A DNA stretch of 64,000 bases, taken from assembly GCF_032062105.1 (NCBI RefSeq), contig NW_026937360.1, positions 682,001 to 746,000 on the forward strand, given 5' to 3'. Of this stretch, positions 2,870 through 36,663 are shown in pieces. Position 1 is the stretch's first letter. Every line of letters starts with the position of its first letter. Made by a program: the position numbers and the translations under genes. The notes under the pieces are model-generated. The model did no database searches. It was not told the DNA's origin and worked only from the letters and a program-made list of their open reading frames with translations. This DNA comes from Saccostrea cucullata (lineage: Eukaryota).

Positions 2870-5800
2870 ATGTTGGATATTTTTATGAAAAAGTTCTCCT
2901 TTTCAATCTTATTTGCTTTTGGACAGTTATTCCTTTTTGCAGGTAAATTTAATTTTTGATACACCTTCCTTAACTATATTTTCTTTGCTTCGAATTCAAA
3001 CATTTTTTTTTACATTTATATTTGTATTAAATTTCCTTTGCATTATCTAGGAGGGTCATGCACATTTCCCAGTTACTTGGTTGGAGAGTGGACAAGTGCA
3101 GAAAGGGGCAGTCTTACCATCACAACAAATTCCATTTATAACTACAAAGTTTTCATTCCATCAGCGGACCCGAATAATCCGACGATTGAATATTATAATT
3201 TTACGTGTCTCACTCAAGTCAACACAAATCGCTTTACAATCAAGTAAGTTTTTATACCAATAGACAAAAGATTAGTTTTTAGTCTTTTTACATAAATTTT
3301 CAAGGCAAATATATATTAATCGACTTCCAAATGTACATGTCTATAAAGCATGTAAAATTGCAAGTTCAAACTCTTCTTTTTCAAATACAATTTAACAAAC
3401 TACTATAAACAACTTAAGATATTTTCATTTAATATTATCTTTAAATGATGAAGACGTTACACTGCATGAAAAAAATACGTTATGATTATTCAGTACAGTA
3501 ATTTGAAAATATCTTTTTTTTTAGATCAGTTAACTTCAATGTCATATTTGGAACCAATGTCTTCTTTTATGTCTGCCTTGATTTCTACAATGTGAATGAC
3601 CAATTAAACTACTACTACTATGCCACAGGTACTGTACATTAATGAAGTATTGAATGAATCATAACTTAATATGATTAGTAGTTTGTTAAATTGTATTTAA
3701 AAAGATAGAGGCGAGTTTGAACTTGCAATTTTTATGCTATATATTATACATTTGGAAGTCTATAAATTTGATTTGAAAATTTAGGTAAAAACAAAAAATT
3801 TTCTATGAATTTTTTATATGCATACTTTTGGGTTAAGAGGAACTTGGCAATCAATAACATTTATGATATGAATGATAAATACTTCCATGAAAATTAAAGT
3901 CCAAGGACATATTTCATATTTCAAATTACATGTATAAGCACAACAAACACGGACATCTAATTAAAAAGCATTGGTAGAATCAGACGCAATGAAAGAGTTA
4001 TAATATTCTGTCAGACGAATTAAGATTTTTTTTTTCAGTAGAAAAGATTAATATCCAAACGTTTTCTTCATTAAAATTTCTATCTAGGTAGACCTGTACA
4101 AAACAACCTTCAGTACATTTCATCACATTTATTTTTTCCTAGGCAATAATCTAATTTTACATTAAAATATTTTTCTCTTATTTTATGGTAATATTAATTC
4201 ATGGCTAGGAAAATAAACTTCAAAGTTTACCCAAGAGTGAAAGATTTGATCCCACTGTTACTTCCAGCATTCCTTGTTTTGGACCTGTTCATAATTTGTA
4301 TCATTTTCAGGACTTTCTAGAATGATCACTATATATTTCCATTTCCAATTGTTTTCTCTATGATAAACACTACAAAAGTGTTTCTTGTTAATTCCATGAT
4401 AATACCCTGTGGTATGTATATTTCTCTATTGTGTATAAATATACTCAAGAAAAAATAGATGTTTTAATTGTTTACTAAGTAATTTGATATGATATATATT
4501 TTTTTAACAAACAAAATAAATAATGAATTATTTCGGCTCGAAAGCAAGTCACTATGCAACGCTGTCCACTATAACCGAGGCATCGCGAGTCCGAGAACAC
4601 CACTTCCGTAACAGCCACGTGGAGAAATTGACATTATGGATCTGTACGTACTCTATCATCTGATACAGACATCGTCCCTTAGTCATTACCATCCGACTTC
4701 TTAAGCAACTCAACTTCTTCTGTTATTATAACATCCATACAAATCGGTTTCCTGACCATGCTGACCATCTCCCGTTTCAGCAACATTGCATTCAATATGG
4801 CGGCGGAGAAGTGACATAGTGCTTACTTAGTATTTATATTCCTGCTTCCGACAACCTGAATCTAGGTCACATAATTAAAGTCAACAAGATTACTTTGATC
4901 ATCATTTAAAATTCTTTTGTTGTTTATTTTATAAACGTTGATATTTGACCACGGTAAATATAAATAGTCAATAAATTGTTTCGTTTTTTGGGGAACTATT
5001 TTTTATAGTAAAATTTGACGTCATGGGGCTTTGTGCATTTCAAATCTACTCAATTAGACGGTATTTCGATTTATTTTAAGATGGTTATTTCAAGTAAAAA
5101 TGGAAATATAAGGAATACTAGTTTTGAGGGTATGCCAGGGAATAGGATAATTTTAGCATAACGGGCTTCGCCCGTTATAATTGTTGATGCCCTTGATAGA
5201 CAGTGATTCCTTAAATAACCATTTTAATGTTTGATGCTTAACCTGTGTGTTTTCTGTTTTTAGCCATAGATAACTTGATACGTGAGAATATGGTGGGTAT
5301 TGCTGAGGATAGGTCTAATGCTCAGGAGAGTATCTGTACTAGGAGCTACATAGATCCTGTCAACTTCATTACGTTACTACGGAAAGGTATAACGATGAAT
5401 TAGGAATAAATAAAAAACGAAAGATTTCTGAACTTTTATCGTGCTTAGTCAGTCTTAGTCATACGGCGTATTTTCATTCTCTATATATATTATATATCAA
5501 GGTTATCATTAATAGTAGTATATATGTTTACAGTATTAAAGACACATTGTGTCTTGTTTGTCACTTGCCAAAAACTTTTGGTATAGATAAATGTAATAAA
5601 TTTGCTTTTTTTTATAGATGCAGTAGAAAGTAATGCCATCCAGACTCTATGTCCTGACATCTTACAAATGGTTTATAATAACATCACATTTATAAGTAAC
5701 TCGGGTACTTCAGACAACTGTGCTGCAGCACAACTCGATGGCTGCACAAACAAAACTATGCTCAACTTTACACAAGATGGATGCACTCAGACAACACTCT

Positions 5801-14068: not shown

Positions 14069-14335
14069 GCCCGCTTGGCGCTGTGGTTAGAGCGTTTGGT
14101 CAAGAGTTTTGGTGTAAGGAGTCCTTACGTCTCAGGTTCGAATCCTATATCGGAAAATGGAGTGTAGTCCTTCGGACGATTAACACCTAGAAAGAGATAT
14201 AACCTGATGCAGTACGCGCGGACACGAAAAAGATCCATCAATACTCAATGTATCTGGATGCCAATAAATTTGCAGCACTCTACCAGCATGTAGTTGTGGC
14301 TCAAATTAAAAATTCTCGAAAGGGTCGTGATACAA
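14069..14335 (+). mobile_element. tRNA-derived SINE or tRNA pseudogene
   Basis: Pol III A box TGGCGCTGTGG (14076-86) and B box GGTTCGAATCC (14135-45), with a GTAAGGA/TCCTTAC stem between them. No intact acceptor stem. A GC-richer body follows; the 3' boundary is approximate. Confidence 0.6.
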
Positions 14336-14520
14336 TCAGCAAAATATAAAAGCAGACTTTTTAACAGCTCCCCAGGGCAGCTTACTTGAACAACATATAA
14401 CGTACTCCAAAGGTGACTTAATTACACCGCTTCTAGTATTTAGAACAGTGCAACATTGAGTATAATATGCATCTTTTTAAGAATAAATTGTTGAAGGAGA
14501 AGAAAGAAGCATTTTCTTCT

Positions 14521-14708
14521 TTGTATATGGTATTTACTTTACTAAATATCTTACAAATGCTTTCTGCTTGAAATGTTCCTTGGTCAAAATATAACAAATT
14601 TAAATTATATCATTATTGTATATGGTATTTACTTTACTAAATATCTTACAAATGCTTTCTGCTTGAAATGTTCCTTGGTCAAAATATAATAAATTTAAAT
14701 TATATCAT
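14521..14708. repeat. Local direct duplication, 95-bp period, 2 copies
   Basis: TTGTATATGGTATTTACTTTACTAAATATC...AAATTATATCAT at 14521 and 14616, nearly identical. Confidence 0.9.
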
Positions 14709-16179
14709 CAGCTCATATATTTCTCTTTTTTTATTCTCCTTAATTTGCCTTGTCATACACATTTCTACTGAATATATGCATGTATATATTTATATTTTTC
14801 AATGTTATATTAATAATATTTACTTCTACATGTATGACTTGATCTTGTATCGTGGAAAGGACTTATATAGGCAGTGCCTGCTGTCCAATCCAATTATGTT
14901 TATTCATAATAAAATATTGTTTAAATTAAAAATATATATGTAACAAAAAAATGAAGTCGCCAACTTTATTATATTCATTCATTTCATATGAAAGTTAAAT
15001 TAGCTTCATAAAAACAACAATGTAACAAACAATCGGCTCCATGAAGAGCAGAAAGGGTCCATCTGAAAATTCTTGTCAGAAACTTCTTCACATAGACGAA
15101 AAATAAGCCATCCTTTCATGAGTACAAATAAATAGATAGAGGCTCTGAGAGAATTCTTTCGAAGTCTCCAAAATATATTACACTTTATCGGAACACCTTT
15201 TCTTATTTCTTAAAGAACATATAGATTTGCATTCAAAATACCTTTCAAGTTACAATTTGTATTTTCGACCAGACGATCTTGACAGTCCCTGACTTTAACA
15301 GTGTATCAAAATAAGTTTACTAAAATTCCAAATTTAGAATCTTTTAACCTTGAGGTTCCATGTAGTTTGACAAAGGGGACTGGCCTTGATAATCGTACAT
15401 AGTACATTCAAACAGAAAAGAAAACGTTAGTTGCATTACTTGGATTACATCAGAGAGAACGTGAACGTTTGCCAAAAAAATCATCCATATGTAATTCCAA
15501 ATTCTGGCAAATATGTTTTTTTTTTTTGTGTGGGTGACATATAAGATCATAAGTTCGGAAGATAAAAAAAGGAAATACTGAAGGTCTCATTGAAGCCATC
15601 TAGAGACCATTTCGCCTATTTGTTTTAATCTGACCCTTTTAAAACGGACAAAAAATTGTTCAATGCGATTGTATATGTTACTCCCACAAGTCCTGAAATA
15701 TTGAATACACACTTAAGCATTGAATATTCCCAGACCCCCCCCCCCCCCCCCCTTTGGAATAAGGTATCTATTTTAGGCAAAATTGTAAAACTTAAACCAT
15801 CCAAATCGTAAATACATTTTAAATCTGAACTCATGTATATATTACAAGCAATAAAAATACAAAAAAGAAAAGACGAACACAAAGTGAATTGGAATTGAAA
15901 TTTTGTACAGATGATTCATATATCAGATGATTCGCAAAGGGAAACTGAAGTTGATACCGTGTGATATGCCCTTCAGCATAATGAATTTTATATATACAAT
16001 TGCACCAATGTGTCTTATTAAAGTTAAAAATAATAAAATAACAACATTCCCCTAAAACATTAACAAATTAACCATATTTAACATCTCAAGTAGTCCTTCA
16101 TTCAAAACCAAAACAATGTCTTGGATTACACATTTTGCCATTTATACATCTAATTCATACTATGCATATGAACATTTGT

Positions 16180-16666
16180 TCACTTTTTAGACATTTTACG
16201 ATTTTTATTCCCGGGTTCTTTCGAACTCTGTTTTTCAAGCTTTGGTTTTCCTGTTGTCTTTTTCTTGTCTTTCTCCTTTTCCTTGTCCTTTTCTCTGTCT
16301 TTTTCCTCCTTTTTGTCCTCTTTTTTCTCCAGCTCCTCGGAAGCCTTGCTTTCTCTTTTAAGTTTTGATTTCTTTATCTCTAAGATATCGTGAAGTGTGT
16401 TTCGTTTGGGATCTGCAAGAGCTCCAACATCAAAACTCTTCTTGGAGACAATTTTGGGAAGAAGCACGAACTTAGCGATATTGTAGAAATTAAATGGATT
16501 GTCCTCATCTACGCTGTCCACAGATATTGCATCATCGTCTGCAAATGGAAAATAAATCTTTTAATTCATTGCGCATGCGCGAATTGTTGTTGATGACATT
16601 GATTAGTTAAAAGAAGATTTTTAACTCACCGTGCAGAGAGGTGCTCCAGTTACTATGTGCTGTGAA
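16180..16666 (-). CDS. C2: small Lys/Glu-rich protein related to C1; start codon not located
   Basis: Terminal exon 16538-16180 after acceptor TTTTCCATTTGCAG, reading DDDAISVDSVDEDNPFNF...KKEDKKEEKDREKDKEKEK...MSKK*. A GTGAGT donor follows 16630. No in-frame ATG found upstream; TAG stops lie just above 16666. Confidence 0.5.
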
Positions 16667-18029
16667 CTATTGCTATGACAGCGTGGTCAGAAGATACTGA
16701 CTTCTACAGTTCTAATCAAGTGACGTGAAACTAAATAAGCTATAAGCATGTGGTGTTAATCATCGACACAAACAATCGTGTTAGTTTTTGTGAACAAACT
16801 TTATTGCATTTATCAAAACATAGTTTAAAACAAGTATCACATTTTTTATCACAATTCCTTATATCACAGTAAATTAACTTAATTAATTGACCCGAGAATC
16901 ATTTGATCAAATCATAGTACAAACTCCTCCGACATACAACACAACTCTAAACTAAACGTAGTCTAAATTGTCAAACCCCATACACTCAGTCCTGGGAAAG
17001 CATACACCAACTAAGAGAGTAATGTAATAGCTAGACACTAAAAGAAGGAAAACAACCAAAAACATAATCATAAAACAAAAACAAAACGGATTATATATAC
17101 ACAAACTGATTTGACAGATATGGTCGTTTAAATCGTAATGTCAATAATAGCTTGAATCTTCGTATCTCATTTATTTCGAATCCTCGTAAATGGGACTCTC
17201 TCTTATCGCGGAAGCACAGTTTGCGTAATCAGGACTTGCACAGACGACTCCGTTATAATAGACAGACTCCGCTGAACTGTATAGTTTCTCAAATGAACGA
17301 TATAACTGATCGTATGAATGGTAAAGAAAGCGGTCTTCTGAACGATGGATTTCCCTTAGTCCTACAATACCAAAGTTTGAGACGTATTTTATTAATTTGT
17401 ATTACATTAGATAGGAATGGATCATTTGAGCTATAGTGTGGTATCTTTGGGTCGAAGAAGGTAGAATGGTTTGGAAGGAATCGGCATGACTTTCCTCGTT
17501 GAAAATTATTGGAAACTTTAAGGACAATGTGTTTAAAGGAACACAAAATCAAGGAAATGCTTTTGAAATAGGACAAAGGGGTGTAACTCAATAATAATAA
17601 ATTAAAAGAATATATTAAAATTACATTGTACTCTTTCTTTCTCTTTTTCCTTCTCTCTCTCTCACATGAATACTCACTATTGCATATTTATCTTATTCAT
17701 TAGATAATTCATACATAAAAATGTAGTTATTGCATTGTTACGTACTGTGAATGAGATGATTAAAATGGAAAATGGAATACATACATTTAGGCAATCAGTT
17801 GATGTCTAGTTTTATATATTATACATAGAAAGGCAGTTGATGATTGATCCTCTATAACACTATATATTCACACATGTTAGAAAAAAGTTAGTACAGTGAA
17901 AGGCATGGCACAGTAAGAACACAATATCCACAGAATTAGTATCAATCAATGCAATAAGCTCCAAATATAGTTATTATTTAACATTTTAAAAATATTTAAC
18001 GTATGTAAAGTGTATAAAAGATAAAGACT

Positions 18030-21000
18030 TTATGTTTTACGTTTAACAGTTTCAGGTGGAGGAATATGTCTATCAATTAAAAATGCAGAAACATCACAAG
18101 TGAATAGACTGGCTAGCGAACCTCGTCTTGCAGGTTTACTGGTGTCCTTCTTGTCTGACAACGCATACAGGGGCTCCACCTTTGGAAGGATGTCGAGATT
18201 AGGCTCCACAATTGGCCCAATTCGAAGTGGTCTCTTCGCTTTGAATCCTGGGATTGGATCCAATTTGTTCATTCTGAATACTGTATTAGTCACGTGTTCT
18301 CCCTGCTCTACGCTGCTTTCTGGTGAACTAGGTCGCTGCTTTTTGCATTTATCGAGAGAACAATAGCCTTTCTTTTTCAGAATAATAATCAAGATAATTA
18401 AGGCTATGATAAATAAGGCACCTAATACTATTGTGATGTAGTACACAGCACTTGATCCACCTTCAACTTCATCATCTGAAAGTAAGATCTAAAGCATTAT
18501 AGACATTCTCCTGCTGGAGATGTTCTTTGTTTCTTAAAATAAAAATCTCTAACAATGTTATGGTTTATTATCTTAATGCATTCTTATAAATAATAAAAGC
18601 AGCGCCAATATATGTTGCTTAGTATTATTATACACGTATGATACAAAGAGGAACTATTTTAAGAGTAACAGCACGCAAAGGTAAGGTAAATTACTTACAA
18701 CAAGTCTGAGTAGCTCCTGTAAATGACATTGTCAGACCTGGAGATGAAACTGTGGATGCTGTCTGTGTACTGTCTGAGCAATAGTTTGGGAACATGGAGG
18801 CGGACGCACCACTGATAACCTGCAAAACAGTATACCCATGTATTATCAGAAAAGGAAAGGACTTACTTGCTTTAAATAAGACTATCAAAACGGTAAACCT
18901 ATGTATCAACTGACGAATAAAGAAAAAGAACCTGATTGAAATTAGACTAACTTTTTGTTTTGGTTGTAATTATATGACTCGTGATACGTACTAAACAGGC
19001 AAACTGGTAGTTTACTCCAGACGTGTATGCGTAGGACGTGGTCCCAACAACTGTACTGTCATTGTTCCAGAGCGAGAGGTAGGTGCTTCCTCCGCTACTT
19101 ATACTATGCATGCAGGTCCAGAAACCACCAGCTACAATATGACAATAATTTACTTCTTCAATAATAATTCAAAAATAAAAAGGATCCTTTAACATCCGTT
19201 TCTAATACTACCAAGTTCAATAAATCGACCCAACACACAGATAAAAGAAAGCAAATTTTGTTTTTGAATATATAAAACTGAAAAATTGTGGTTAATATTT
19301 TAGGATAATATATTTTTCTCCATTTTAATATGTATAGAGTAATTTGTATGACGTAAGTAGTAAGATATTGTCTCTCTGGACATATTCGAAATAAATCTAA
19401 TAATATAGACCTTAAAAGATGTAAAATTGATTTTACTTGAAAATTTATGTGTGTTTCCACATCCACCGTCATACGTGAACCTCATCTCTGTCCTGTCGGT
19501 ACAGCCATCCATTGCGTTACTGGAACATGACGTACTTCCGGTAGAGTCGGTTATTGAAACAGAGCTATATGACGCCAATAGATCAGTCGCACACGTAGCC
19601 TCTGAAGCTCCCGTCGTAATTGTACCTAATATAAGAAAGGAACTCTTCTACACTGAAGTTTTAACATAAATCTTATTTTAATGACAATTAGATTCATAAG
19701 TTATTTGCTAGATAATGCTTCTGACAAGTAATATTATTCGACCAAAAACACTTTTGGGACTTTTTGGTTTTATCGTTATCACCAGTTATGACTGTTTGTT
19801 CAATTAATTAATGCATTAAATTCATTATTACTGTGACAGACGCAGTTTATTCTTTTTTATTTACCGTAGTAAAACTAATTTCTATTCTTTATTGCACTTG
19901 CATGATAAAAGTTACATATATCATTCAATTTTCAGGAGTAAATTGATAATTTCTTTAAACATATAATGGAATATTCAAATAACATTCTCTCACCTTTGGA
20001 TCTGCATTTGATTAATTGTGCATGTGCTTTTCGCTCAAAGTGAATGCTGACAAATATCTAGCACATAAAAACAAAATCAAGAGCCGTGAACAAAACAAAA
20101 AGAAAATGATGCGAAAATCTCATTGTTCAGGCTTTATCAAAAAAGTATTACAACATGAAAATGATACGACAAATGCAGTGCATAAAGTGCGCAAATGCCC
20201 ACGTGCAACATTTCAACTATACCAAAAACGTGTTTGGAGATTCAAAATGATAAAATTGAGCTAAAGGTAGGAAAAGAGGCACAAATTGCCAGATAACAGC
20301 AGATTATAAGGGGACAACAATAGATATTTTATATAGAGAAAACAAATTCTTCACAACACAAAAAAATACGCAAAAAACTATGTATATTTGCCGATGTTTA
20401 CCATCTTTGACTAGCATTACAAACGACGACGTGTTGTACGGTTCTGCTATATCACAAGTCTCCGCTAACGTTCCATTTTTAAGAATATCAATAAATCCTT
20501 TAACGTGGTCGTTGTTGGTAGAAGATATTGCTAAATGACAATAAAAATCATTAAACCCTTAAAGATTTATTGTGCCTGAAAAAAAAAATGTTTCAGTATT
20601 CTCCTACAAAGGTTTTTTTTTCTAAGTTCGCTAGACCCATTTAAAAGCGTTTTGATGCCTGAAAGTAACCTCTCAGTATTCTCCTTCAAAAGTTTCGATC
20701 AACGTTAAGTTCTGGAAAATCACGTCTTGGAATACCAATTAAAGGACTCAAAATTTTCTTTGAAACATAGCAATGAAGAAATGCTCGGTATTTATTTTTT
20801 TATCACTTATATAATGTAGGTGTGAGTGAAATTGATATCGCTGATTAAAAACTCATATGACACATACAAGATGATTCAAAGTGTATGAATATTAGTAAAA
20901 ACATTTCATTATCCTTTTTAATACGTGGTAATCATTGTTTAGTGTCATAAACAAACTCTGCATTTGAGGAACGGGACAATATTTATCAAACGGTGTAGTT

Positions 21001-24000
21001 GCGAGATAAAATTAGTTTCAGGTGTAAGGCAAGGGGTTCCATACCGTCCTTGACTAATGTAATAAATTTTCCAGTACTGTAGGGCTCAACTTCATTACAA
21101 GCGCTTGTAAGATCTACCGTCACGGCATCCACACGACCAAATATATTGTCATTATTGGTCAAACTGATGGCTTTTTTGAAAATATTGAATAGTTTAATTG
21201 TGATTATAAACTTAAGATAAAAAGAAATTGAATTTCAACTCTTACATGTGCCAATGTCATGTTTTATTGTAAACTCAAAAAAAGTCATAGAAACTATTAT
21301 CTTGATTTTTTTATACCAACTGAAATATAATCATGCTCATTCATGAACTGTATATGATATTGAGTTTGATTTACTTACTTGTTCCGTGGTAATAGTAATA
21401 CTTTGTACTGGAAACTCTCCATAGTTCTACACACAAATAACCACGAATGTATTGACCAAACACAAGGGCTGTCTCTGTTGCTCTAAAATAAGGATTTTCA
21501 AAATGATATAAGAGAACCTTATCTGCATTTATTCATTTTTTTTTTATTTCTTGAAAATTCACAAACCTTTAACAATTGATGCTTCATACTTCACAGAACA
21601 ACTAATTATCGATTATTTTTAATCCCATTTATTTTCATGTCGAATCATTAAACCTATTAAACTATAGGATGTAAATTTACCCATAGTATTAAATAATGTG
21701 CAAAGTTTTGCTAAATGTGTTTAATATTAGATTGTATAATCTGATATATTAATACCATGGATTTTGTTGAATATTAAATATTTCATGGTCTTTTTTCAAC
21801 TGGCGTTGGAGTTAAGAAATTCAATTTTAACTACCCTACAAAATCCACATTTTAATTATTATGTGCTATCACCAACCTAATCATACAATGATATTGCATG
21901 TATTAGCTCGCAGTAACATTATGTAATCATGGCGCACTTGATATTGAAAAATTCCAACACGTCGGAATCATTAAATGTGTTTTCTTTAAGTGATCTTTCA
22001 TTTTTTGATTCACAGTAAAACATAATATAAAGTATCTTCCTTTATAAAAATGCAAACCTAGTTTTCACAAATACCTTAATAGATATTTTCTGTCACTGTT
22101 TATGTAGCACTCAAAATCTAATGATTGCACGGCGGCTGACATGTAAATGGGATATCCCGTTAAATGGGTAGAATTAAATGACAGTTTTCCTTTATAAGCG
22201 CTGTACCAATCGCCCGTTATCTCTGATGGAAATGTGCAGGCGCTTTCTGAAAAAAAAAGAAATCAAAAAAGTTATTTCAAATCATCATATTTGGATTTTT
22301 TACAACAAAAAAAGTAAATGGTCACCTAACTATAACACTTCGTGATAAACGTAATGACTTCATTTTTTCACTTGTCAACCTCCCTCACTTACATGTATGT
22401 GGTAGTATACACTGATCGCCTCAAATAGGGTACTAGTATATTTTCTCAATTGACAAGATGCGCAAGAGCATGACTCTAAGTACGAACAATTTCATGAACA
22501 AGGTAAGCTTCTGACAATCAATTTGATGAAACAAGAATATCAGCAGTCATCATTTCGCAAATTATTTGGTCGACAATGATTTGTAAGTAAATACAATCTA
22601 CGTGTATATATTAATTAAGTCTACGGAATTTTCCCCTGTTCATGACAAGGAGCACACGGATATTGTGACCAGTCAGCTTGGTTTAAATTAATTACTCCTC
22701 CATGACACCTGATCCAATCCCTGCTGATTTAGAGGTCTGACTTTGCTCAGCTCTTTATTGGCATTGCTTGAATGAAGTTGTGAGCTTGAATACCGTCTGT
22801 AATTTCCATATTTCATGATTAAACTTAAAATAACCCGATTAGGGAATTTTTTCAATCTCTCTTTAGCACTTTTTTAAAATTTGTATTTCCGCTTTTGCAG
22901 AGAGGTATCTTTATTTATTTTTTTTATATTTATTATATATCTATAATGACCCTTGTAGGTCTAAATTACTTGCCACAAAATTTGAGTTTTTCTGCAATCA
23001 AATACTATCAGCTAAACGATTTTATGGAATGCTGCATCCTAGTGTTATATTAAAATAATCCACTGGAATATCTTATCTAAAACATGAAGATGAGAGGCAC
23101 TGTGAATTTCAGTAAATGTTAAAAATTATTCTTATTTAGCTCTTATTAACTTCAGAGGTTATTTAATATGTTGTCATTCTCAAAAGAATTCTTTAATGCA
23201 GTTAGAATTTGCAAGAACACAATGTACCCAAAATGTCAATTGCTCTACTTTTGGAACAAATCTATTTCAATTTACATTGTTCTTTTAAAAATGTCACATC
23301 ATTTCCTTTTTATTTTCCTTTTTATTTTGTTATGAATCTTTAAAATCGCCGGGGTGGTACTATTTAAACTTTATTGCACGTTATAATTAAATCCCTTCAC
23401 CTGACCACCTCCAAAGTTTAATGGGTCAATTTGTGTAAACTACATCTGAAGTATTACTGCATGTCATAATTATAAAATCTGCTAGAAAAGCAATAATAGC
23501 CGTATGGCTTAAATTTTCTTTTCTTTAAAAATTTCATATTCACTTCGAAAACAATGAAATACATTTTCACAGATTATTTTCTTTCTAAATTCCATATTGT
23601 TAACTGCATCTCTTGATTTAAAAAATTTCTTACAATACACATATTTCAGAATATAACCGTTACTGTTTGGTCTTTTCAGTTGTCATGTTGCAAATGTCAC
23701 TAGGTAAATCGAAATTAATCAAAAGTTTTTTGGTGGGGTTTTTTTTTTTTAGAGAAAATGATTTGAAACGTCTACCTACTGAATACAAGGCAATAATGAT
23801 TATGTAACCTCCTTATGGACATTACGAACTCTATTCAATAAACAAAACTCATGGCACCTGATCCTACCTCTGCAATTTGCAGGGACTCGTGTTTTATGCC
23901 CTCTTGATATGTTTGTATTCTTTTAATGTGTTTTATATATTGATCAACTGTTCGTTTTCTTCATCTTTTACATTACTCATACATGTATACTGTTTTCATC

Positions 24001-26839
24001 ATCGGGGAGGGAAAACTGGGGTTCTCAGTTTAAATTTCATAACAGCAGAATTCTTGTATAAGTTGCCAGAAAACCATGCAATTTTCATTACTTTCGCAAG
24101 AAATGGCCCAAAATTTATACTTCAAGGCATGCATACAAAATAAGGCAATAAGCAAGTTTTTTAACTTTTGATATACATATAATTGATTTATATGTATAAA
24201 TAAAGTGTCGTAGTATATTTGGTGTACAAAATATGGCCAATTTTGTCAGAAGTCCTTGGTCATTTAACTCAGAGCTCACGAGCAGATCAAAATTCAATAA
24301 AAAATAAATTACAGTCTTCAAATAAGTGATTCTACTTATTTTCGATAGAGAACTCTTTTCTGCAATTGTGTGTAAAACATTAATATTCAGTCTTAAGATC
24401 AACTCTTAAAGACCAAAGTTTTAAAATGCTAGCTAAGTTAACTTTGTCCTCAAACAAAATGGTTTAAAATTACCTCTCATGACAGAGAATAGAGTTCTGA
24501 TTATTATAGTCCTGGCCCCGGGATCATGAAACATCTTATGCTTAAGTCAAAATTCTCACGCTGTTTTTAAATTTTATAGAGGGCAAACAGATCAAAATTG
24601 AAATGTGTTTCAATTTTGATTCATGAAAGTGCTGTTATTTGCAAATTTAAGATCAATAATTAAGAAACATTTTACAGGTGATTGAAAATGTGACTTAGGT
24701 TTAACATGTCTAAGTCTGTTTCATGATCCTGGGGCCAGGTGCATTTTTCATAGCATTTCGTTTTCATTTTTCAATGACATCATGACGGTTTCGTATGGGA
24801 TTTTAAATTTTATATCGTACATAAGAACTGTGCGTGTGTTTGCCTTGTCCATTTAATCACATTGTTTAATAGTCTACTTTCAAAATCCACTAAGGTGCAT
24901 AATGCATAATGATTATAAAATGACAAATGGATTTAGAAATTGCACAATGAAAAGCTTTGATAAAATGTATGCTTCTTAAACATGCAACCCTGGAGTTCTT
25001 TGTTAAGTTGTAAAGTATGAATACAAACAATTGAAAAGAGGAAATGTGCACTTTATGTATTTTACGACGCAGAATTACGTTTTAATAAAACATAGCATAA
25101 AAAAGTGTCAAGTTTCAACATAATGAGTCTGAAGCTTTTGAAATTTTGTCTTATTTTCACATAAATAGCATTACATCCTAATCCCGTCTACTTACCGAAG
25201 ACAAAAGCTTACATTATTATATATATTTTAAAAATATATAGAAACAGTGCATTTTTTAAAATTCAGCAAAGCTAAAGAGCACTTTAGCATAATGTGAGTA
25301 TTTGCAAACGCTTAATTATTACACTTAACAAATCTATTAAACTTTTCATTTGACATGTCAGTATGCCAGTTTCGTGGTAAACATATCTTAATTTTAGCAT
25401 CGTCATCATGCAAGTCACATACTTGCCTTAAAACAGAACATCTTGTTAATCTATAATGAAGCGTGTCTCTTCCAATTGAAAAATCAAGAGAAAATTTCAA
25501 TAAAAGATAAAGCTGAGGGAAAATCAATGTACGCTTTTTGTACACGTTGGAATTAAATATCCCAGACACCATGGGTTGATCGTTTTTATATTTGCAGCAA
25601 ATAGGATGTAGATTTTCTATAGTTGCTTGAAAACACGAGAATTTCATCAATGTTAAGTTAACGCTTTACAAATTGAACAATCCCCATTTTGTTACTTGGG
25701 TTCATTATGTTTGTTCATTAAATTGAATCAATGATTAAATAAACTTGTTCATTACTCAGATTGACTTTGAGTGGACAGAGATCAGAATTTAATTGTTTTA
25801 TACTCAATCGGTATGCTGAATCGATTTCTGATATTAGCATATGAAATTCCAAGAACCATGTTATCTTTTTGTCTGTATATCCTTTAGAACTTTAATTGAA
25901 AATGAGGGCTAAGGTTTCAAGCAAGTTATTCAATATATAAATAATGCTGTAATACGTTTGATTTCTGTCTTTTAATAAAAATACATAAAAGACAATGACA
26001 AATAATCTATTCCCTTTACTCCATATTTCATAGAAGGAAAACACTATTTCTTTCTTGTTTTTCGTCTTTTATAAAATCATATTTCTAGTGACAATTTGGT
26101 TTTCATTTTGAAATTTATTTTCACTGGCATATTTAAATAAATAATAGAGTAATTGACAATGCATTTCATGCCTTGTCATTTTGATCTTGTCTTTTCATGT
26201 TTTTTATGTGCGACTTTTTCCCAACCATGGGTTTTCGAATTTTAAATGGAAAATGGTTGAATAGAAGATTTTGTCAGAGTCTTAATCTTTGTTCGCCTAA
26301 GCCCTGTTATACTATAAATTATACATAATATTGAAGCTTTTTTTACTCATGTTGTTTTGTTAAGAGCATAATTCACATTTGTTTAGATTAAAGATTAATA
26401 AATTTTTGAGATTAATATCACTTAACAAATAAAAAGATGTTAAGATTTTATGTTAGATATTTAGAGATATGTGTCCCATCAGAGAAAGAGAGAGAATGAT
26501 ATTCCTCCCTAAATCGATGTTTACTACTTGTATGATCTTTCTTAATTTTTTTCCGAGTGCTTTGTAATTCCAATGCAAATGCTTGAAAAGAAATCCCAAT
26601 CATCTTTGTGCTAAACATATGCTGAGTGAGTTTTATCATGCGACTTACTTCATGAATAAATATTTTGTCAAAAACGGTTTTAGTCCTCTTTCCAGCACAT
26701 AAAATATATTTTGATAAAGCATCACATGAGGAAGTTAAAAATAAAATTTTGAATTTGATTTTAAATTGTTAAACGTACCTGATAATCTTACGAAGATGAG
26801 ACAAATTGCAAGTGATGTCCAGGAAAAGCTAGATAACAT
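18030..26839 (-). CDS. Paralog D: Cys-rich type-I membrane protein, ~453 aa
   Basis: Exons 26839-26779, 22246-22075, 21482-21379, 20530-20402, 19625-19437, 19131-18992, 18819-18699, 18475-18030. 1362 nt open. Signal MLSSFSWTSLAICLIFVRLSES, motif CTFPSEITGDW, 12 Cys, TM VYYITIVLGALFIIALIILIIIL then KKK. Exon 1 is the least certain. Confidence 0.87.
22415..22815 (+). mobile_element. Decayed Penelope-like retroelement 3' fragment (RT C-terminal remnant plus tail)
   Basis: The disrupted frame reads SQLTRCARA...EQFHEQGKLLTINLMKQEYQQ...SFRKLFGR, resembling the SQLIRYARACS...FRKFYGR end of Penelope-like RTs. It is followed by the shared CATGACAAGGAGCACACGG...ACACCTGATCC tail. Confidence 0.55.
24511..24739. 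mobile_element. MITE (possibly PIF/Harbinger-like)
   Basis: TIRs CCTGGCCCCGGGATCATGAAACA and TGTTTCATGATCCTGGGGCCAGG, with further inverted similarity (CTTAAGTCA/TGACTTAGG). Confidence 0.75.

Positions 26840-29276: not shown

Positions 29277-29280
<4 letters not shown>

Positions 29281-29343
<63 letters not shown>
29281..29343. repeat. (CT)n microsatellite
   Basis: Perfect CT run of about 31 units. Confidence 0.95.
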
Positions 29344-29347
<4 letters not shown>

Positions 29348-30856
29348 TGACACGTAATGCTATACCCTCTTATTGCTCTAAACTAAAATAAAGCTCATAA
29401 TAAAGACTACATGAATATTATTATCTTGATGAGCATTCATATATATATTAAAAATTATCCCGTTGTATCGTACGCAATCATTTTATTTAAAACATTTTAA
29501 AGAAAAAGTTCGAACCCTTTTGTAACTCCACTTTAACTGCTTCAAATAAAGGCCATAATCATAAAAATCATCTACACACATCCCTTTGCAATTTCAGAGA
29601 ACACTGTATGTGGATGTTTTTACATAATGTGACTGCATCCTGTTGGCCATGGTCTTTTGAAAGATTCTAGGTATTTTTCTCTAAAATTATTTACCTATTT
29701 TCCTCATTCAAAAACCAAACAAATAAAAACAGTATATGTAATGAACCAGCTATAATACTAAATTGACCAAATTTTAAACCATTATATCAAGATACAAGAC
29801 TATCCAAGGATCAAATACATTGTACGATTGAAATTGGATGATACATGTTAATGAACAAAGAGACTATTAAAGCAAATATTCAATACCTTACCATTGTATG
29901 AATGATCAAAGTAAAATATAAGGGTTTACAGTTTGTTGCAACAGAACAAGTAAAATAATGAGTAAATGTTACCTATTCATAAAGGAATGATTTGTGTTTC
30001 TGTTGGTATTTTATAAAGTTGTTTGGTAAAAAATTTACAAAATTATTTCGTTTTCCTTCATTTGCTGTTGAAAAACTTGCATTTGAATAAACATGGTCCA
30101 AAATACCATAGATAATATTTTTAACAAATGTGTTTTAATAAATGTTGGTAATTGTATATTCTAAACGACCGATATACTCAGTAGTTAAAATAAATATATA
30201 AAATACATGTATTTTAACAAAAAAAAAATTTTTTGAAACTCTTTTGAACCTCAGACTACTCATTGAGCTGAAAATACCTGAGTTTTGCATATTTTGAGTA
30301 ATGCTTGCTGTATCATTGAAAATAACCTTAGTGAAACGTCAATTGCAATTTGTGTGTTAAACCAAAACCAGACAAGTTTATAAACTTTACTGAATCTAGC
30401 AAATTGCCAAATGCATGAAATTGTATTTTAACAGTTCGGACTTCAGAATTCACTTCTTTATTAAATGTGGCGAATCAAGACATCTTTTTGTTTTACTCCA
30501 AAAGACATCAACATGGTTGAAGCTGACAACAAAGGAGGGACTAGACAAACTTTATTTTTTGTATAACTATCAAAAAAAAATACCAAAAGATGGTAAATTA
30601 ATGGCGGTATAATCAAAATCCATTAACTTATACCCAAAATGTGGGCATCATATACACTGTTAAATACTAATCATCACATGACGTGGTTGCATATCGTTAA
30701 TATCACATTTTTGAACAAGAACAATTAGAACTGCTCTTGGCGCAATTATCAGTGGGCAACTCACATATGGCACTTTTTTGTATTTAGTCCTGTTAATCTG
30801 TTCTTCAAGCATAGAAGCACAATGGCATGAGCCACAGTTTTCAAGTATCAGAGAAG

Positions 30857-33800
30857 CTATTTCGTGTTGAATTCAAAAATACTTAATGCATCGGTCTTTT
30901 CTCGAAGAATTCCAGGAGTATCATCTAAATACAAAGGTTCTATTTTTACTGGTGGTTGAGACATGATAATATCATGTGATCCAATGACACGTGACTTAGC
31001 TAGCGTTCTTTTACACTTCTTTCCTTTCTTGCGTAGTATAATTAATAAAATGATTAAAGATATGATGAATAAGGATCCAAGTATAATGATGACGTAGTAC
31101 ACAATATCAGATTCGTCCTCTGTCGTGATATCTGCAAACAAAAAGAAACTATAAATAAATCACATGTATACCACCAAATGTACATACTGCTAAATTGGAA
31201 CGTATATTTAAGAACAATTGTTTCTTTTAGTTTCCAGAATGATGTTTTGTCTATATTTCAGTACGGTATGTTTAAAATGAGGTTTTCAATATATACCGTA
31301 TGTAATCATAAATAATAGATATTGAAAATAAATATATAAAAATTTTAAAAAATTATCTTTGTTTTGTAGTTAACAAACTTTTACATGTATTATAATTTGA
31401 TAGCCCTTGTGATTTTATAGAAAAATCTAGTCTGTTCTCAAACGCAGGTGCAAAGAAATGTAGTAAAGTTACAGGACTTATACTCGTATACTGGAACTCA
31501 ACTTACGACAGGTCGAATCAGCACCAGAAAAAGTAAGTTTCAGTCCCGGAGAGGCAACAGAGGTTGGTGTTTGGGTAGAATCGGAACAAATTTTTGGAAA
31601 TAATGTAGCAGATGTTCCTTTCACAACCTGCAAACAGATCAAAATGAAAAGGACCATTAACCATTATTTGTAAAATTAATTGAAAAGATTTTAAGATTTT
31701 ATGTCTATGCTGGTCATGCACGTAAATATGTAAATATTCCTTTTAATTGTTTTATTCACAAAAAAGACTTACAAGACAGGCAAATTTATATGTTTGTTCT
31801 GTGACCAAATCATAGGACCTTGTGTACGTAGAAGTCACAGTCGTGTCATTGTTCCAGAGTGAGACATACGTATAACCATTACTATTTATGCTTCTTAGGC
31901 ATGTCCAAAATCCTCCTGCTGTTGGAAGCATGTAACAATTTAAACAATGAAACATGAATACAACAAACTGTAATCATGCTCAAACGTTCATTCATACCAT
32001 ATATAAACACAGACCTCTTAAAAACATCAAATGGTGGGATCAGGAGCCATTGAAATAAGTAAAGTATATCCATATGGTTGAAAGTTGATAATGATGAGGA
32101 AGTGTAAGCCAGTACGTACCAGAGAATTTGTGCTGAGATTGACATGAAGAATGGTAAGTAAAAGACATCTTGGTTTTACCAGAACATCCATCCATTGTAT
32201 TATTCTCACAACTGGAAGCGTCATTATGTTCGGTGATAGTAACCAATGAAAATTTATCCAAAAGGTCTGTAGCACAAGTAGCTTCGGATGATCCATTCTC
32301 TATTGAACCTGCAATAATATTATAACTGTATTATAATATTAGTTACGCACTCTCTTTTGCAATTTTTTAATGAGTTTCGTAAAATACCCGGCTTTTTATT
32401 AGATGGACCTTTAAAAATATTGAAGTTTCGAAATGGCCTTTGAATGGATGATCCAGATTAACAGTTCGGGACGATATTCTTGCGATTTAATTTTAGAAGG
32501 TTATATCCTCTAACCCATTTTTATTATTATTTTACTTTTAATAAAACTTTAAGAGTATGTGTATATGTTTAAATTAAAACAAGATTCGATTTCAATATCA
32601 ATAAAACTATATTAGCATCACACCATCTTTAAATTCCATAAAAGTACCTACTATGCTATGAAAATTTGTCTAAAATTTACTTTTGATGCATTACATTTTT
32701 TCTGTCACGGTCTATCATCAATATTATCATCATCAAAATTACTTCAACTAGGGGAATTAAAAGTATATATTTACCATCTTTTATTATAGTGACAAAGTAT
32801 GTCGTGTCATATGACTCGCCACAGGTCTCTTCGAATGTTGGAATTTGCCCGTTAAATCCTCCTCTGTTGTGATCATTATTGGTTGTACTGATTGCTACAA
32901 AAAAGCGAAACTAGCTGTACTTTCTGAAACAAATTCCTATGTCCTCAGAAGGAAACAAAACTTCAAAGTCCCTAAAATGGTTATCTATAGTGAAAAGGTG
33001 ATGATGATAAATAGTGATCAATCTAAAAATATCTTAAATAAAATTTTTGGAGACGTCTAATTCTGTCTTTTGTGATATTTCATGTAGAAAGAGGGCGATT
33101 TAAGTTTTTAGAACTTGTGCCCAATTCCATTGTATATATTTATTGCAGTAAATTATGTTCAAATCAAACCCTCTGGAACAGATAGACAGAGCCTTCCATA
33201 CTCAAATTCACAATAAAAACAGTCTAATCAATTGGAATGAGACAGGTTAGCTTAATACGACCAACTGAAAGATTGTTTGATTTGCTAACATGCTCATAAT
33301 TATGAATTTACGAAATTCTGATTTTAAGGGGTCGATGCAATCCCTGAAATATCAACTTATGTAACTGTCAGTTGCCTACATGTACCTCAGTAAAAAAAAA
33401 GAATGATCGTATATCGAGCATGCTCTTGAGAATATTGAATAAGCGAGATGTTAAACTATATTCAGGTGACAGTAGGATATTACTTAATGAATCAGGAAAT
33501 TTGACGATTAAAAAGCTGAACTTGAGTCATCCTTTTTGTCATACAATTTAGTACCAAGTTGGTTCTTATCTCGTATAGTCAGTAAAAGCATCCAAATATG
33601 AAAAAAAAGATGTAGCAAACTCTGTAGTATTTTATGTCCACTTGCATATACCGAGTCGATATATGAATGGACGAAACTATAACTGTTAATTGATTATATA
33701 TCGTCGACATTATCTAAATATCGAGTTGAAGGACACGGCAAGTGTTTTCTTTTTCTTACCTAAAAATTGTGAATGAAATCTGCTTGAAAAGAACAAAAAA

Positions 33801-36663
33801 AAACCCAGTTCAGTTAATAAGGGATTCCAATAAGCAAACATTTGCATTCCATAAATTTGTTGGACGAACTATAGCTTCCGAAGACTGTATGAATGTTGTC
33901 AGTGTGGAGCTCTAGTACCATTTAAATATCATCAGCAATACAGTGATTTTGAACAAAGTACGTATGTAAATTAGAAAGATTTAAGAAAAAAAGAAAAAAT
34001 ATTTAAAAAAAAATAAAAAGCAGGGAAAGCAAACATAATGAAAGCATCAGCTCAGGTATTCTTCTCAATAGGCAGAACGAACGAATTATATGACGACCAT
34101 GACTTGTTTCATTATTGAAAATTTGAAGCAGTATACCCCATATACACACCAATCTATCATTAAGTCAAATGTTGACTGAAGTTTTCCATACTAGTTGTTA
34201 GGCTATTATTATTCCACTGAATTGTCCGTTATTTCCCGATCATGACAAGGAGCACACGGTCGGCAGGGGATGCTCACTCTTCTGGCATCTGATCCCACCT
34301 CTGATGTTTAAGAGGCCTGTGTTTACTCTGTTCCTGATTTGTACCGGTGTTTGTTTGAATAGACTTTTGAGCTGCTTGGATACTGTCTGTTATCTTCATA
34401 TTTCATACATATCCAATGAAATAAAAAAGATTTGTATTGAAAAGCTAAAGATTGTTTTTCCCTTAACGTTGGTCGTATTTGTTTATTTGTTCGCACTGAT
34501 TGTGAACATTGCATTAAATTGATGCAGCTTGATACAATTTGAAAACCAAAAGAAGCATTCCTTTAATTTCTAAAGTATGTTCAAAAAGTGATAATGATAA
34601 CTTAACATGATTTCACAATAAATACTCATAACATAAGGAGATCAAGATATCTACGTCTGTAGATCTGACCATTGATTCTTTCGCATCAAAATTATCATTG
34701 TATCTCCCAATTCATAATTCATATATTCCTTCCTGTTTTATGAAAACGAAGCCTCTGACTTAATTTCACTTTTCAATTATAATTGTGTAGGGGAATCGTG
34801 AGATACGTACAGTAAAATGTAATTGGATTTTTTCGCATAAATAATTTAGCATTACGGAAAGCTCTTTGTGACAAAGAGGAAGTATAAAAATCGAATATTT
34901 ACATCAGTATTTTGCCTTTAACTAATGAGCTACATCGACATAATTATTTGAAAACAGACGAGATTTATTGCATATTCTTACAGAATCGATTACTATTCAA
35001 AATTGCATCGAAAACACATACCTGTTTTGTGAAAATAGTAGTACTTTGTGGCAGAAACTCTCCAGAATTCTAAACAAATAAAGCCGTTAACCAGTCCCCC
35101 GAATATAAGGACAGTCTCAGTAGATCTATGAACAAAAGAATTAAATTGATCAAAGTAAATTGACTCAGTTGATGTTAAAATCATGATTCAGTAGTAATGA
35201 TTTATTTATTTGAGTATTGAAATTCAGGTGGTATATAATTTGTCGAGTTCAACACAGTTTTACAAAGTTGATAAAGAAATCCAACTGTATAAATAAAGAA
35301 ACTTTTGAATTAATAAAAATGTATACTATTTCATCACTCCTTAGAAAAAAGATTCAATGGATAAATTATATATAGTTTCAAACAGAATGTGTTTACGTCA
35401 AAAAGAAAACTTACCTGAACATATATACTCTGTCTCTCTGTTCAATACATTCATAATCTAGAGAATTGACGCTGGTAGACATGAAGATAGGGTACCCTTG
35501 TATGTGTGTGGAGTTGATCGTCAATGGTCCTTTCTGGGCACTGTGCCATACCCCTTCTAATTCATCTGGTAGAGTACACAAACTTTCTAAAATAATAAGA
35601 ACGTCTACAAATGAAGTTTCTTTACATACTAGTTTGTATTGAACATCTTATTTGTCACCCGTCTTATATTCAACGGTGCTCATTCACATTTGCTTTTTTT
35701 TAAAATTTATTTTTTATTATTTATTTATTTGTTGTAATATTTTTATTGGGGGATGTTTTAAAGAACTATATGCATTTATATATTATTTTAGGTACAGGAT
35801 AAAATATTTTGCAAACATAACTTTATAAAAAATGTCTAATGACAACGTCTACAATTGTTCAGTTGTTGGTATTGCTCTTCTCTCTCTCTCTCTCTCTCTC
35901 ATACAAACAAAAATTATCAGTTTTCTGCAACTACTGTTAATCAATGTATTTAGTTTGAGCTGTGGGTTGCTGAAGACACACACATACACAGTTAGTGATT
36001 GAAACACTTTTATTTATCACAGAGAGGGACAGACGTTTTTTGTTTTTTTTTTAAATGTGAACCTTCCTTCTCAATGAAACAGAAAACCTTGGCACAATTT
36101 TTTTTAAGACGGAAAGCTTACTTGGGGACATTACAGACCTACTAACGAAACAAATAGGTTTAGATGATATGTCTAATGATGCATCAAGATATGCATACCT
36201 ATAATGATCCATTGACGCCTTTTTAATAAGCTTAAGAAATATTTCTTTACGGATTTCAATTTCTGTTTTCAATGAGGCATATTGTACAATAAAATCATTT
36301 GCCCACCAAGATGGGAAAAAATAAGTGACTGTTTGCATTAAATTACATTCCATCTATTCAATAAACTTCAATGGTCCTCGTTTTAGGTGAAAAAATGAAT
36401 TTGACACATCTTCACTAAAAGTCATGCTGATTTGTTTTCAGGACGAAAAATTTGAAAATTATACTTTTTTTCTTTTAGAATTATTTTTAGATAAACATGC
36501 TCTTGAAAATAAAGAAAATTGAAAATAAGAGCTTCAGATTCCTATAAAATATTTACAAAATAATTTTAAGAAATTAAAAAGAAAACAAAATAATTTTTGA
36601 CCTACCTGCGATTATAAGGATATTTCCAAGAGGAAAAAATAAAAGTAAGGAAAACTCTGGCAT
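30857..36663 (-). CDS. Paralog E: Cys-rich type-I membrane protein, closest to D, ~394 aa
   Basis: Exons 36663-36606, 35586-35415, 35125-35022, 32894-32775, 32308-32120, 31918-31773, 31627-31507, 31131-30857. 1185 nt open. Exons 2, 3, 5 and 7 equal those of D in length (172, 104, 189, 121). Motifs CTLPDELEGVW, EATCATDLL, GGFWTC, SLWNND, CSDSTQT; TM IVYYVIIILGSLFIISLIILLIIL. Confidence 0.88.
34040..34405 (+). mobile_element. Decayed Penelope-like retroelement 3' fragment
   Basis: CATGACAAGGAGCACACGG (34241) ... GGATGCTCACTCTTCTGGCATCTGATCCCACCTCTG matches the copy at ~22641-22720. Left boundary approximate. Confidence 0.5.

Follow-up and report, generated by a model that had tools for sequence, protein, structure and literature searches.

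A conserved oyster cluster of four paralogous genes for type I membrane glycoproteins of the DUF7043-DUF7042 superfamily, with predicted tandem lipocalin-like barrels and alternative forms of one receptor

Concerning membrane-anchored proteins that contain beta-barrels, APCDD1 has been described as unusual in that it unites two lipocalin-like barrels with 12 disulfide-bonded cysteine residues and anchorage in the membrane; both lipid and WNT7A are bound by it (PMC10193966). Lipocalins and other calycins, such as tear lipocalin (1xki), RBP4 (4o9s), Tp0751 (5jk2) and the avidins, are eight-stranded up-and-down barrels, the lipocalins being soluble proteins with a single barrel and one or two disulfides. 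The mollusc and arthropod proteins that carry the Pfam domains DUF7043 and DUF7042 (and also DUF7044 and DUF7045) consist of a DUF7043-like barrel, a DUF7042-like barrel and a transmembrane segment. In the current study we analysed a 64,000-nucleotide (nt) stretch of the genome of the oyster Saccostrea cucullata (assembly GCF_032062105.1, contig NW_026937360.1, positions 682,001 to 746,000 of the forward strand; hereafter the window), a genome of 1.17 Gb with a G+C content of 31%. Positions 2870-36663 of the window hold a conserved oyster cluster of four paralogous genes, each for a type I membrane glycoprotein of the DUF7043-DUF7042 type, together with a small gene, C1, in the order A> B> <C1 <D <E, and the start codons of A (2870) and E (36663) coincide with the limits of the region marked out in a first-pass annotation of this sequence.

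The products of A, B, D and E share a receptor plan of a signal peptide, an ectodomain of approximately 290 amino acid (aa) residues with 12 conserved cysteines, a short stalk, a transmembrane helix and, on the cytoplasmic side, a tail of 33-198 aa (132 aa in A, 33 in B, 109 or 198 in D and 55 in E). Exon boundaries were deduced from six-frame translations, in which segments bearing the cysteine motif were located, followed by the choice of phased AG/GT sites common to the four genes. In the models rebuilt in this manner every intron is of the GT-AG type and every frame is closed; the intron phases 1,2,1,1,1,0,1 are common to all four genes, with an extra phase 1 where a microexon is present, and B differs from A, D and E in having its exons 3 and 4 fused. 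An N-terminal hydrophobic leader, one transmembrane segment, the motif C-x-[FL]-P-x3-G-x-W-x-S-x2-[KR]-G and 4-8 N-glycosylation sequons per ectodomain were found in each of the four. The first-pass annotation had described four complete, frame-closing spliced genes sharing a signal peptide, this motif, conserved intron phases and a single transmembrane segment, and the description is borne out by the rebuilt models, by the orthologues presented below and, for D, by RNA. The 12 aligned cysteines that it reported are likewise present in all four proteins, ahead of the transmembrane segment, but only once A and B each gain a 24-nt microexon, since both have 11 without it. Its claim that D and E are close and A and B distant agrees with the pairwise identities, which amount to 49% for D/E, approximately 30% for A/D, 23% for A/B and 24% for B/D.

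Gene A (2870-7021, + strand) encodes 485 aa in nine exons (2870-2942, 3051-3243, 3525-3628, 5264-5386, 5618-5803, 5897-6009, 6128-6251, 6372-6395 and 6504-7021) and is collinear over 465 aa, at 74% identity, with the products of Magallana gigas LOC105321891. Because alignment with the orthologues showed that a ...TDTCQ... segment was missing from the 11-cysteine models, the microexons of A and B could be located. That of A (6372-6395, 24 nt, phase 1 to 1, with a TTTCAG acceptor and a GTAAGA donor) encodes DSCQTVLP, including the 12th cysteine, at the position where the Magallana orthologues read ITDTCQIILP. Gene B (8141-11215, + strand) encodes 380 aa in eight exons (8141-8195, 8586-8763, 9008-9231, which is the fusion of exons 3 and 4, 9505-9687, 10098-10213, 10464-10572, 10681-10704 and 10962-11215); it is collinear over 371 aa, at 58% identity, with P0012, the representative of a protein cluster that contains Crassostrea gigas LOC105321885 and 232 transcript-derived members. 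The microexon of B (10681-10704, 24 nt, phase 1 to 1) encodes EICRPTTP, again with the 12th cysteine; it is the sole frame-keeping acceptor/donor pair within its intron and stands where the orthologue reads TTDTCQPTTQ. Gene E (30857-36663, - strand) encodes 394 aa in eight exons (36606-36663, 35415-35586, 35022-35125, 32775-32894, 32120-32308, 31773-31918, 31507-31627 and 30857-31131) and is 82% identical over 395 aa to Saccostrea echinata LOC133192469, the MPEFSLL start included. As a separate observation, the A intron at 5804-5896 (+), which lies between the exons bearing the sixth cysteine (5618-5803 and 5897-6009), is 93 nt long, in frame and free of stops, and its retention would add 31 residues and leave the protein unbroken.

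Gene D (16180-26839, - strand) encodes a short form of 453 aa and a long form of 542 aa. Its exons are 26779-26839, 22075-22246, 21379-21482, an exon 4 present in two copies (4a at 21045-21170 or 4b at 20402-20530), 19437-19625, 18992-19131, 18699-18819 and 18030-18475, the last of which is replaced in the long form by 18122-18475 joined to 16180-16538. The first-pass annotation had proposed mapping RNA junctions onto the exons, and an alignment over 16150-22149 of four RNA runs, two of raw oligo-dT reads and two of contigs, supports the junctions of the D model within that interval. Those backed by RNA are 18475/18699, 18819/18992, 19131/19437, 19625/20402, 20530/21379 and 21482/22075; six D junctions match the model to the base, and the seventh, 18819/18992, was placed differently by the aligner, at the same length and with one single-nucleotide polymorphism. 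The long form with exon 4b matches isoform X1 of S. echinata LOC133192539 from end to end (542 versus 541 aa, 91% identity), and this match also validates exon 1 (26779-26839).

Exon 4a (126 nt) and exon 4b (129 nt), both of phase 1 to 1 on the - strand, are alternative copies of the same exon, 4b being the copy used in the RNA through the two junctions that flank it. When compared to S. echinata, exon 4a displays 0 non-synonymous and 3 synonymous changes, and exon 4b has a ratio of non-synonymous to synonymous substitution rates (dN/dS) of 0.42. The order 4a then 4b is the same in S. echinata and Crassostrea virginica, 4a being 83% identical in the latter. The 4a type occurs in C. gigas isoform X2 and in the Crassostrea proteins or transcripts P0003 and P0086-88, the 4b type in isoforms X1 of S. 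echinata and C. virginica and in the Crassostrea proteins or transcripts P0089-92, and exon 4 is skipped in isoforms X2 of S. echinata and Ostrea edulis. Given the conserved order and the use of both types in Crassostrea, the pair behaves as conserved alternative exons, which are probably mutually exclusive.

The short and long tails of D branch at an internal donor (18122-18123, - strand, phase 1, ...CGA G/GTTCGC), which is conserved in S. echinata. The joint from 18122 to 16538 is carried by 7 reads of run X21 with 7 start places; it reads CT..AC on the + strand and is in frame. Where the donor is bypassed the tail ends RR-GSLASLFTCDVSAFL..., and this read-through tail, GSLASLFTCDVSAFLIDRH..., is kept as far as C. 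virginica. Its resemblance to the ends of the tails of A and of remote members of the family marks the short tail as the ancestral ending, which the long tail replaces. Read depth on either side of 18122 indicates that both tail forms are made. A stretch at 17150-17550, between the short-tail stop and the long-tail exon, is unique (apart from a match to the haplotig described below). Each of the four runs contains transcripts of it, its conservation relative to S. echinata amounts to 85-92%, and one of its frames ends ...RRPLSLPFIRSVISFI, like the family tail motif; it could be a 3' untranslated region or a further alternative terminal exon.

The exon that encodes the long tail (16180-16538, - strand, 118 codons and a stop) is an alternative 3' terminal coding exon of D, and had been presented in the first-pass annotation as C2, one of two small basic genes enclosed by the cluster. 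It has an acidic serine-rich start, an invariant EDNPF.FYNIAKF...SKKSFDVGAL.DPKRNTLHD block, whose NPF is invariant in five species, and a K/E-rich end; its dN/dS relative to S. echinata is 0.10, and its structural model is of low confidence, mostly disordered, with one long charged helix. The C2 sequence is fused to D in products of C. gigas LOC105321884 (isoform X2), C. virginica LOC111126686, S. echinata LOC133192539 and O. edulis LOC125680491 and also in related Crassostrea transcript assemblies, which brings the oyster species with such a joined protein to five; it was not possible to find an in-frame ATG in the C2 frame (16183-16560) before its last few codons, a GTG start alone being available, and when an independent C2 gene was sought, the upstream exon ending at 16630 proved to have stops in all frames and no ATG reading into C2. 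A separate C2 gene was therefore rejected: the fused orthologues and the 7 in-frame junction reads make C2 an exon of D, and of the two small genes that had been proposed only C1, in two exons, is real. Near this exon is an exon-like block at 16631-16780 (- strand; its 5' limit is approximate), with stops in three frames and the donor CACG/GTGAGT. Five reads of run X20 that are joined to the C2 exon have loose ends matching 16631 onward, and the block is 95-97% identical to S. echinata, above the identity of the coding exons; an alternative first exon is one possibility for it, a regulated or poison cassette another.

Gene C1 (11638-13020, - strand; exons 12942-13020 and 11638-11999) encodes a protein of 146 aa with an isoelectric point of 10.4, which has an MGNSQT start, an acidic serine-rich motif (DYDTVSLDSDSDTDLPFRF), a PPLPG stretch and a poly-lysine C-terminus. 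Its splice runs from the donor CATAG/GTAAGT to a phase-1 acceptor at 11999. The annotation of S. echinata contains a 146-aa gene between D and B, the first exon of which (MGNSQTRH...SSSI) is the exact counterpart of 12942-13020, and the second exon matches Saccostrea cucullata LOC134248032 (146 aa) at 100% identity. C1 orthologues of 144-146 aa are present in S. echinata (LOC133192847), O. edulis and C. virginica, as well as in transcript assemblies, and the dN/dS relative to S. echinata is approximately 0.15. The protein is predicted to be disordered (ESM Atlas predicted local distance difference test score, pLDDT, of 0.44), and the N-myristoylation-type start, that is Met-Gly followed by a small third residue and by Ser/Thr as the sixth, is found as MGNSQT in the window, S. 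echinata, O. edulis and C. virginica. C1 is a basic, disordered and probably N-myristoylated cytoplasmic protein.

C1 and the D long-tail exon have in common the motif D-x-[AT]-[IV]-S-[VL]-D-S-x-D-x-D-x-P-F-x-F, the phase of the acceptor and a lysine-rich end, and an hhalign comparison of their orthologue alignments gives E 4e-4 over 41 columns. The chances appear evenly balanced that C1 is a tail-derived paralogue of this exon. A Pfam scan of the C2 exon and C1 returned no match, the ESM Atlas no usable match for either, and a search for C2-like or C1-like exons beside the other family members in this genome turned up only allelic copies.

To place the cluster among its relatives, a profile built from the fifth and sixth exons of A, B, D and E was compared with 1.84 billion representative sequences, and 85 proteins were retrieved at E<=0.001. 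The top matches whose source was looked up are all from molluscs, either bivalves or gastropods, the named matches are all "uncharacterized", "hypothetical" or "DUF7042 domain-containing", and a few weaker matches are spurious, such as the immunoglobulin-domain protein P0067. The constitutive exons of D have dN/dS values of 0.04-0.20 relative to S. echinata, a sign of purifying selection, in agreement with the old, retained family that the first-pass annotation had proposed. Linkage, which it had advised checking across bivalves, is conserved as well: the order in S. echinata is E>D>C1><B, twice on one 29-Mb contig, that in C. virginica is D>C1><B<A and that in M. gigas is A>B, so that the order E>D>C1><B<A is kept in Saccostrea, Crassostrea and Magallana. 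The family may therefore be described as old and retained, being mollusc-wide, under constraint and collinear in three oyster genera. No contig encoding the O. edulis D protein is on record.

Additional copies were observed in the genome assembly. Contig G000:C15706 repeats, in unchanged order, E, D, the C2 exon and C1 at approximately 34200-55000, where D, C2 and C1 have protein identities of 97-100%, and is probably an uncollapsed haplotig. Sequence like D exon 5 occurs in seven further places outside D, A and E of the window, several of which are allelic copies. More family members lie at G000:C23601:87003, C10330:14411, C22872:296453 and C21005:319064; two of these are 77% and one is 42% identical to D exon 5, and an A-like copy among the further members contains internal stops and is a possible pseudogene.

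The first-pass annotation had suggested that the paralogues may assemble into heteromeric receptors, for a receptor or adhesion role, and may share their regulation with C1 and C2 as independent genes in one cell-surface system. The tight linkage of the genes across the three genera would suit such an arrangement, as would the short motif that C1 shares with the long tail of D. However, C2 is an exon of D and no gene, tandem paralogue clusters arise by duplication and do not imply assembly, and tail length varies widely among the paralogues (33-198 aa). We consider such a heteromeric system quite improbable, and retain the reading of the locus as a conserved cluster of paralogous receptors of the DUF7043-DUF7042 type.

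Membership of that superfamily was assessed using the Pfam gathering cut-off of 27 bits for DUF7042 (PF23069) and for DUF7043/DUF7044 (PF23070/PF23071). In all four genes exon 2 matches positions 2-50 of DUF7043/DUF7044 with E 0.001-0.08 and 14-20 bits, and exon 5 matches DUF7042 with 13.5-16 bits, all of these being single-exon scores that fall below the cut-off; the orthologues reach 17-21.6 bits on DUF7043/DUF7044. Relatives retrieved with the exon profile of the window (P0004, P0006, P0008, P0034, P0043 and P0082) score 31-49 bits on DUF7042, above 27, and the scallop relative P0004 scores 27.9 bits on DUF7043/DUF7044. The fold of the ectodomain was modelled with AlphaFold2 from the S. echinata orthologue of D and a 41-sequence alignment, and the resulting model (pLDDT 88.5, predicted template-modelling score 0.84) is all-beta, with domains at approximately 2-145 and 148-288. 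In the ESM Atlas it matches a mollusc DUF7042 cluster with template-modelling scores of 0.77/0.80 over 270 residues, the fold and domain order being those of the superfamily, and an arthropod DUF7043+7042+7044 cluster with a score of 0.64. Transitive homology and agreement in fold with the DUF7043-DUF7042 superfamily are clear, and the resemblance to DUF7042/7043/7044 put forward in the first-pass annotation is borne out at the level of single exons, of relatives above the cut-off and of the fold; the profile searches and structure prediction that it had recommended for the ectodomains yielded this kinship and the two-barrel model described below, with the orthologues acting as proxies.

The oyster proteins have the same domain order and the same cysteine pattern as the DUF7043/DUF7042 proteins of molluscs and arthropods described above, yet the A, D and E subfamily differs from the Pfam-scoring members in remaining below the gathering cut-offs. 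With the RefSeq models of C. gigas (LOC105321884 for D, LOC105321885 for B and LOC105321891 for A) and S. echinata (LOC133192539 for D, LOC133192469 for E and LOC133192847 for C1) the relationship is one of direct orthology, at 58-91% identity and in the same gene order. It follows that the designation of an undescribed cell-surface system was overstated: the genes already exist as "uncharacterized protein" models in RefSeq and the domains as Pfam families of unknown function, and the cluster is not a new kind of system. A literature search found no text naming DUF7042, DUF7043, DUF7044 or the LOC identifiers, and no published function for these genes.

An exhaustive structural comparison found both domains of the model to be similar to eight-stranded barrels of the lipocalin/calycin type, with Z scores of 5-7.7, and the ectodomain is predicted with high confidence to consist of two tandem barrels of this kind. 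In the model the G-x-W motif lies at the first strand of barrel 1, where it resembles the lipocalin signature of structurally conserved region 1, whereas the part of this barrel encoded by exon 4 comprises its last strand, a short helix and an invariant cysteine. The up-and-down topology of eight strands is that of the lipocalins and calycins, but the lipocalins, as soluble single barrels, differ from the oyster ectodomain, which is predicted to comprise two fused, disulfide-rich and membrane-anchored barrels. Lipocalin Pfam models gave no match, and Foldseek searches of the PDB with the whole model returned only weak matches, with template-modelling scores of 0.17-0.23, to TbpB, AimA and streptavidin dimers.

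APCDD1 and APCDD1L (Pfam APCDDC; PDB 8e0r and 8e0p) share with the oyster receptors a signal peptide, two homologous beta-barrels, 12 conserved cysteines and one transmembrane segment, and the predicted fold and sequence features of the oyster proteins agree with the published architecture of APCDD1 (PMC10193966). It could be proposed on these grounds that the family is a very divergent branch of APCDD1 and acts as a membrane-bound Wnt antagonist that binds the palmitoleate of Wnt. In addition to the common plan, domain ABD2 of mouse APCDD1 aligns with barrel 2 at Z 5.5 over 121 residues, more than any other structure listed, and the domains of both families begin G-[DE]-W-x-S. Homology was examined in four ways, all of which were negative: the Pfam model APCDDC (PF14921) had no match at E<=10 in eight family members, an hmmsearch of PDB sequences likewise had none at E<=10, hhalign against an 11-sequence APCDD1 alignment gave a probability of 1.4%, and single-sequence hhalign against the APCDD1 exons of the oyster itself gave matches of 8 and 24 columns only. 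Moreover, the Z of 5.5 is no higher than that of generic lipocalin-like matches, and the oyster possesses bona fide APCDD1 elsewhere in its genome (G000:C11593:10753-13302 and C20375:454377-456950), with two APCDDC domains, large exons and the transmembrane segment in the last exon. The two groups also differ in the size of the domain, approximately 232 model positions in APCDD1 versus approximately 140 residues per barrel here, and in the tail, which in APCDD1 is short and does not have the tail motifs seen in the oyster receptors. Descent from APCDD1 is accordingly most improbable, and the likeness is one of architecture, not of demonstrated ancestry.

If the predicted barrels possess a cavity of the lipocalin kind, this may accommodate a small ligand, hydrophobic or modified with lipid, at the cell surface, as do those of lipocalins and APCDD1. 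The tail motifs RRxS, NPF and Y-based would then couple ligand occupancy to phosphorylation and endocytic sorting, RRxS being directed to kinases and NPF to endocytic EH-domain proteins, while the choice between exons 4a and 4b would tune barrel 1. Capture of a hydrophobic or lipidated ligand is a possible but tentative function, proposed by analogy with these proteins. A bolder version, in which the DUF7043-DUF7042 proteins are an invertebrate counterpart of APCDD1 (whether convergent or diverged beyond recognition) that captures lipidated morphogens or hydrophobic signals, with 4a/4b retuning barrel 1, the alternative terminal exon replacing an RRxS tail open to phosphorylation by an acidic, endocytic NPF tail and a tail-derived, myristoylated C1 competing for the cytoplasmic partners of that tail, is speculative and very unlikely to hold in full.

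The barrels could instead recognise protein or glycan rather than lipids, in immunity or adhesion, within a family expanded in bivalves and with 4a and 4b as a source of recognition diversity. Calycin-like barrels do also act as protein-binding modules, among the top structure matches are Tp0751, an adhesin of Treponema, as well as protease inhibitors and TbpB, several more paralogues exist in this genome, and the abundance of N-glycan sequons in each ectodomain would be in keeping with such a role. Nevertheless, with two alternative exon copies only and a small family (seven extra places, several of them allelic), the scale is below that of typical immune diversification, and the low dN/dS gives no sign of diversifying selection; we regard this possibility as unlikely, and favour, with the reservation expressed above, the capture of a hydrophobic or lipidated ligand.

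Several points weigh against our interpretation of the locus. RNA support in S. cucullata is limited to gene D, and within D no junction of exon 4a was seen in the four RNA runs over 16150-22149. The direct orthologues of A, D and E (P0002, P0003 and P0093) score 21-24 bits on DUF7042, below the Pfam cut-off, and the full-length Pfam scores and the fold derive from orthologues, which serve as proxies for the joined proteins of the window. The kinship of C1 with the C2 exon is weak (BLASTP E=26, hhalign probability 34%). According to the comparison tool, Z scores of 5-8 may reflect an arrangement that is common among proteins, and function does not follow from likeness in fold; the assignments of NPF, RRxS and myristoylation are no more than matches to motifs, and ligand capture is inferred from the predicted fold. 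Taking these points into account, we still consider it probable that the interpretation as a whole is correct, that is, a conserved receptor cluster with tandem barrels, several isoforms of D and the accompanying gene C1.

Two further open frames were observed elsewhere in the window. One, at 58607-61177 (-), encodes 856 aa with an nSTAND3 nucleoside triphosphatase domain followed by ankyrin repeats; the other, at 56110-56898 (+), encodes 262 aa with an RNase H domain and is probably a retroelement fragment.

Employing a combined approach of gene model reconstruction, RNA alignment, profile comparison and structure prediction, it was possible to correct the structure of these genes with respect to (i) the cysteine-bearing microexons of A and B; (ii) the alternative exons 4a and 4b of D; (iii) the two tails of D; and (iv) the status of C2 as an exon, all of which matter for the annotation or knock-down of these loci. 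The family spans molluscs and arthropods, APCDD1 is the only known protein of like plan, and the two-barrel model provides a first testable idea for its function, which may be the capture of a ligand at the membrane.

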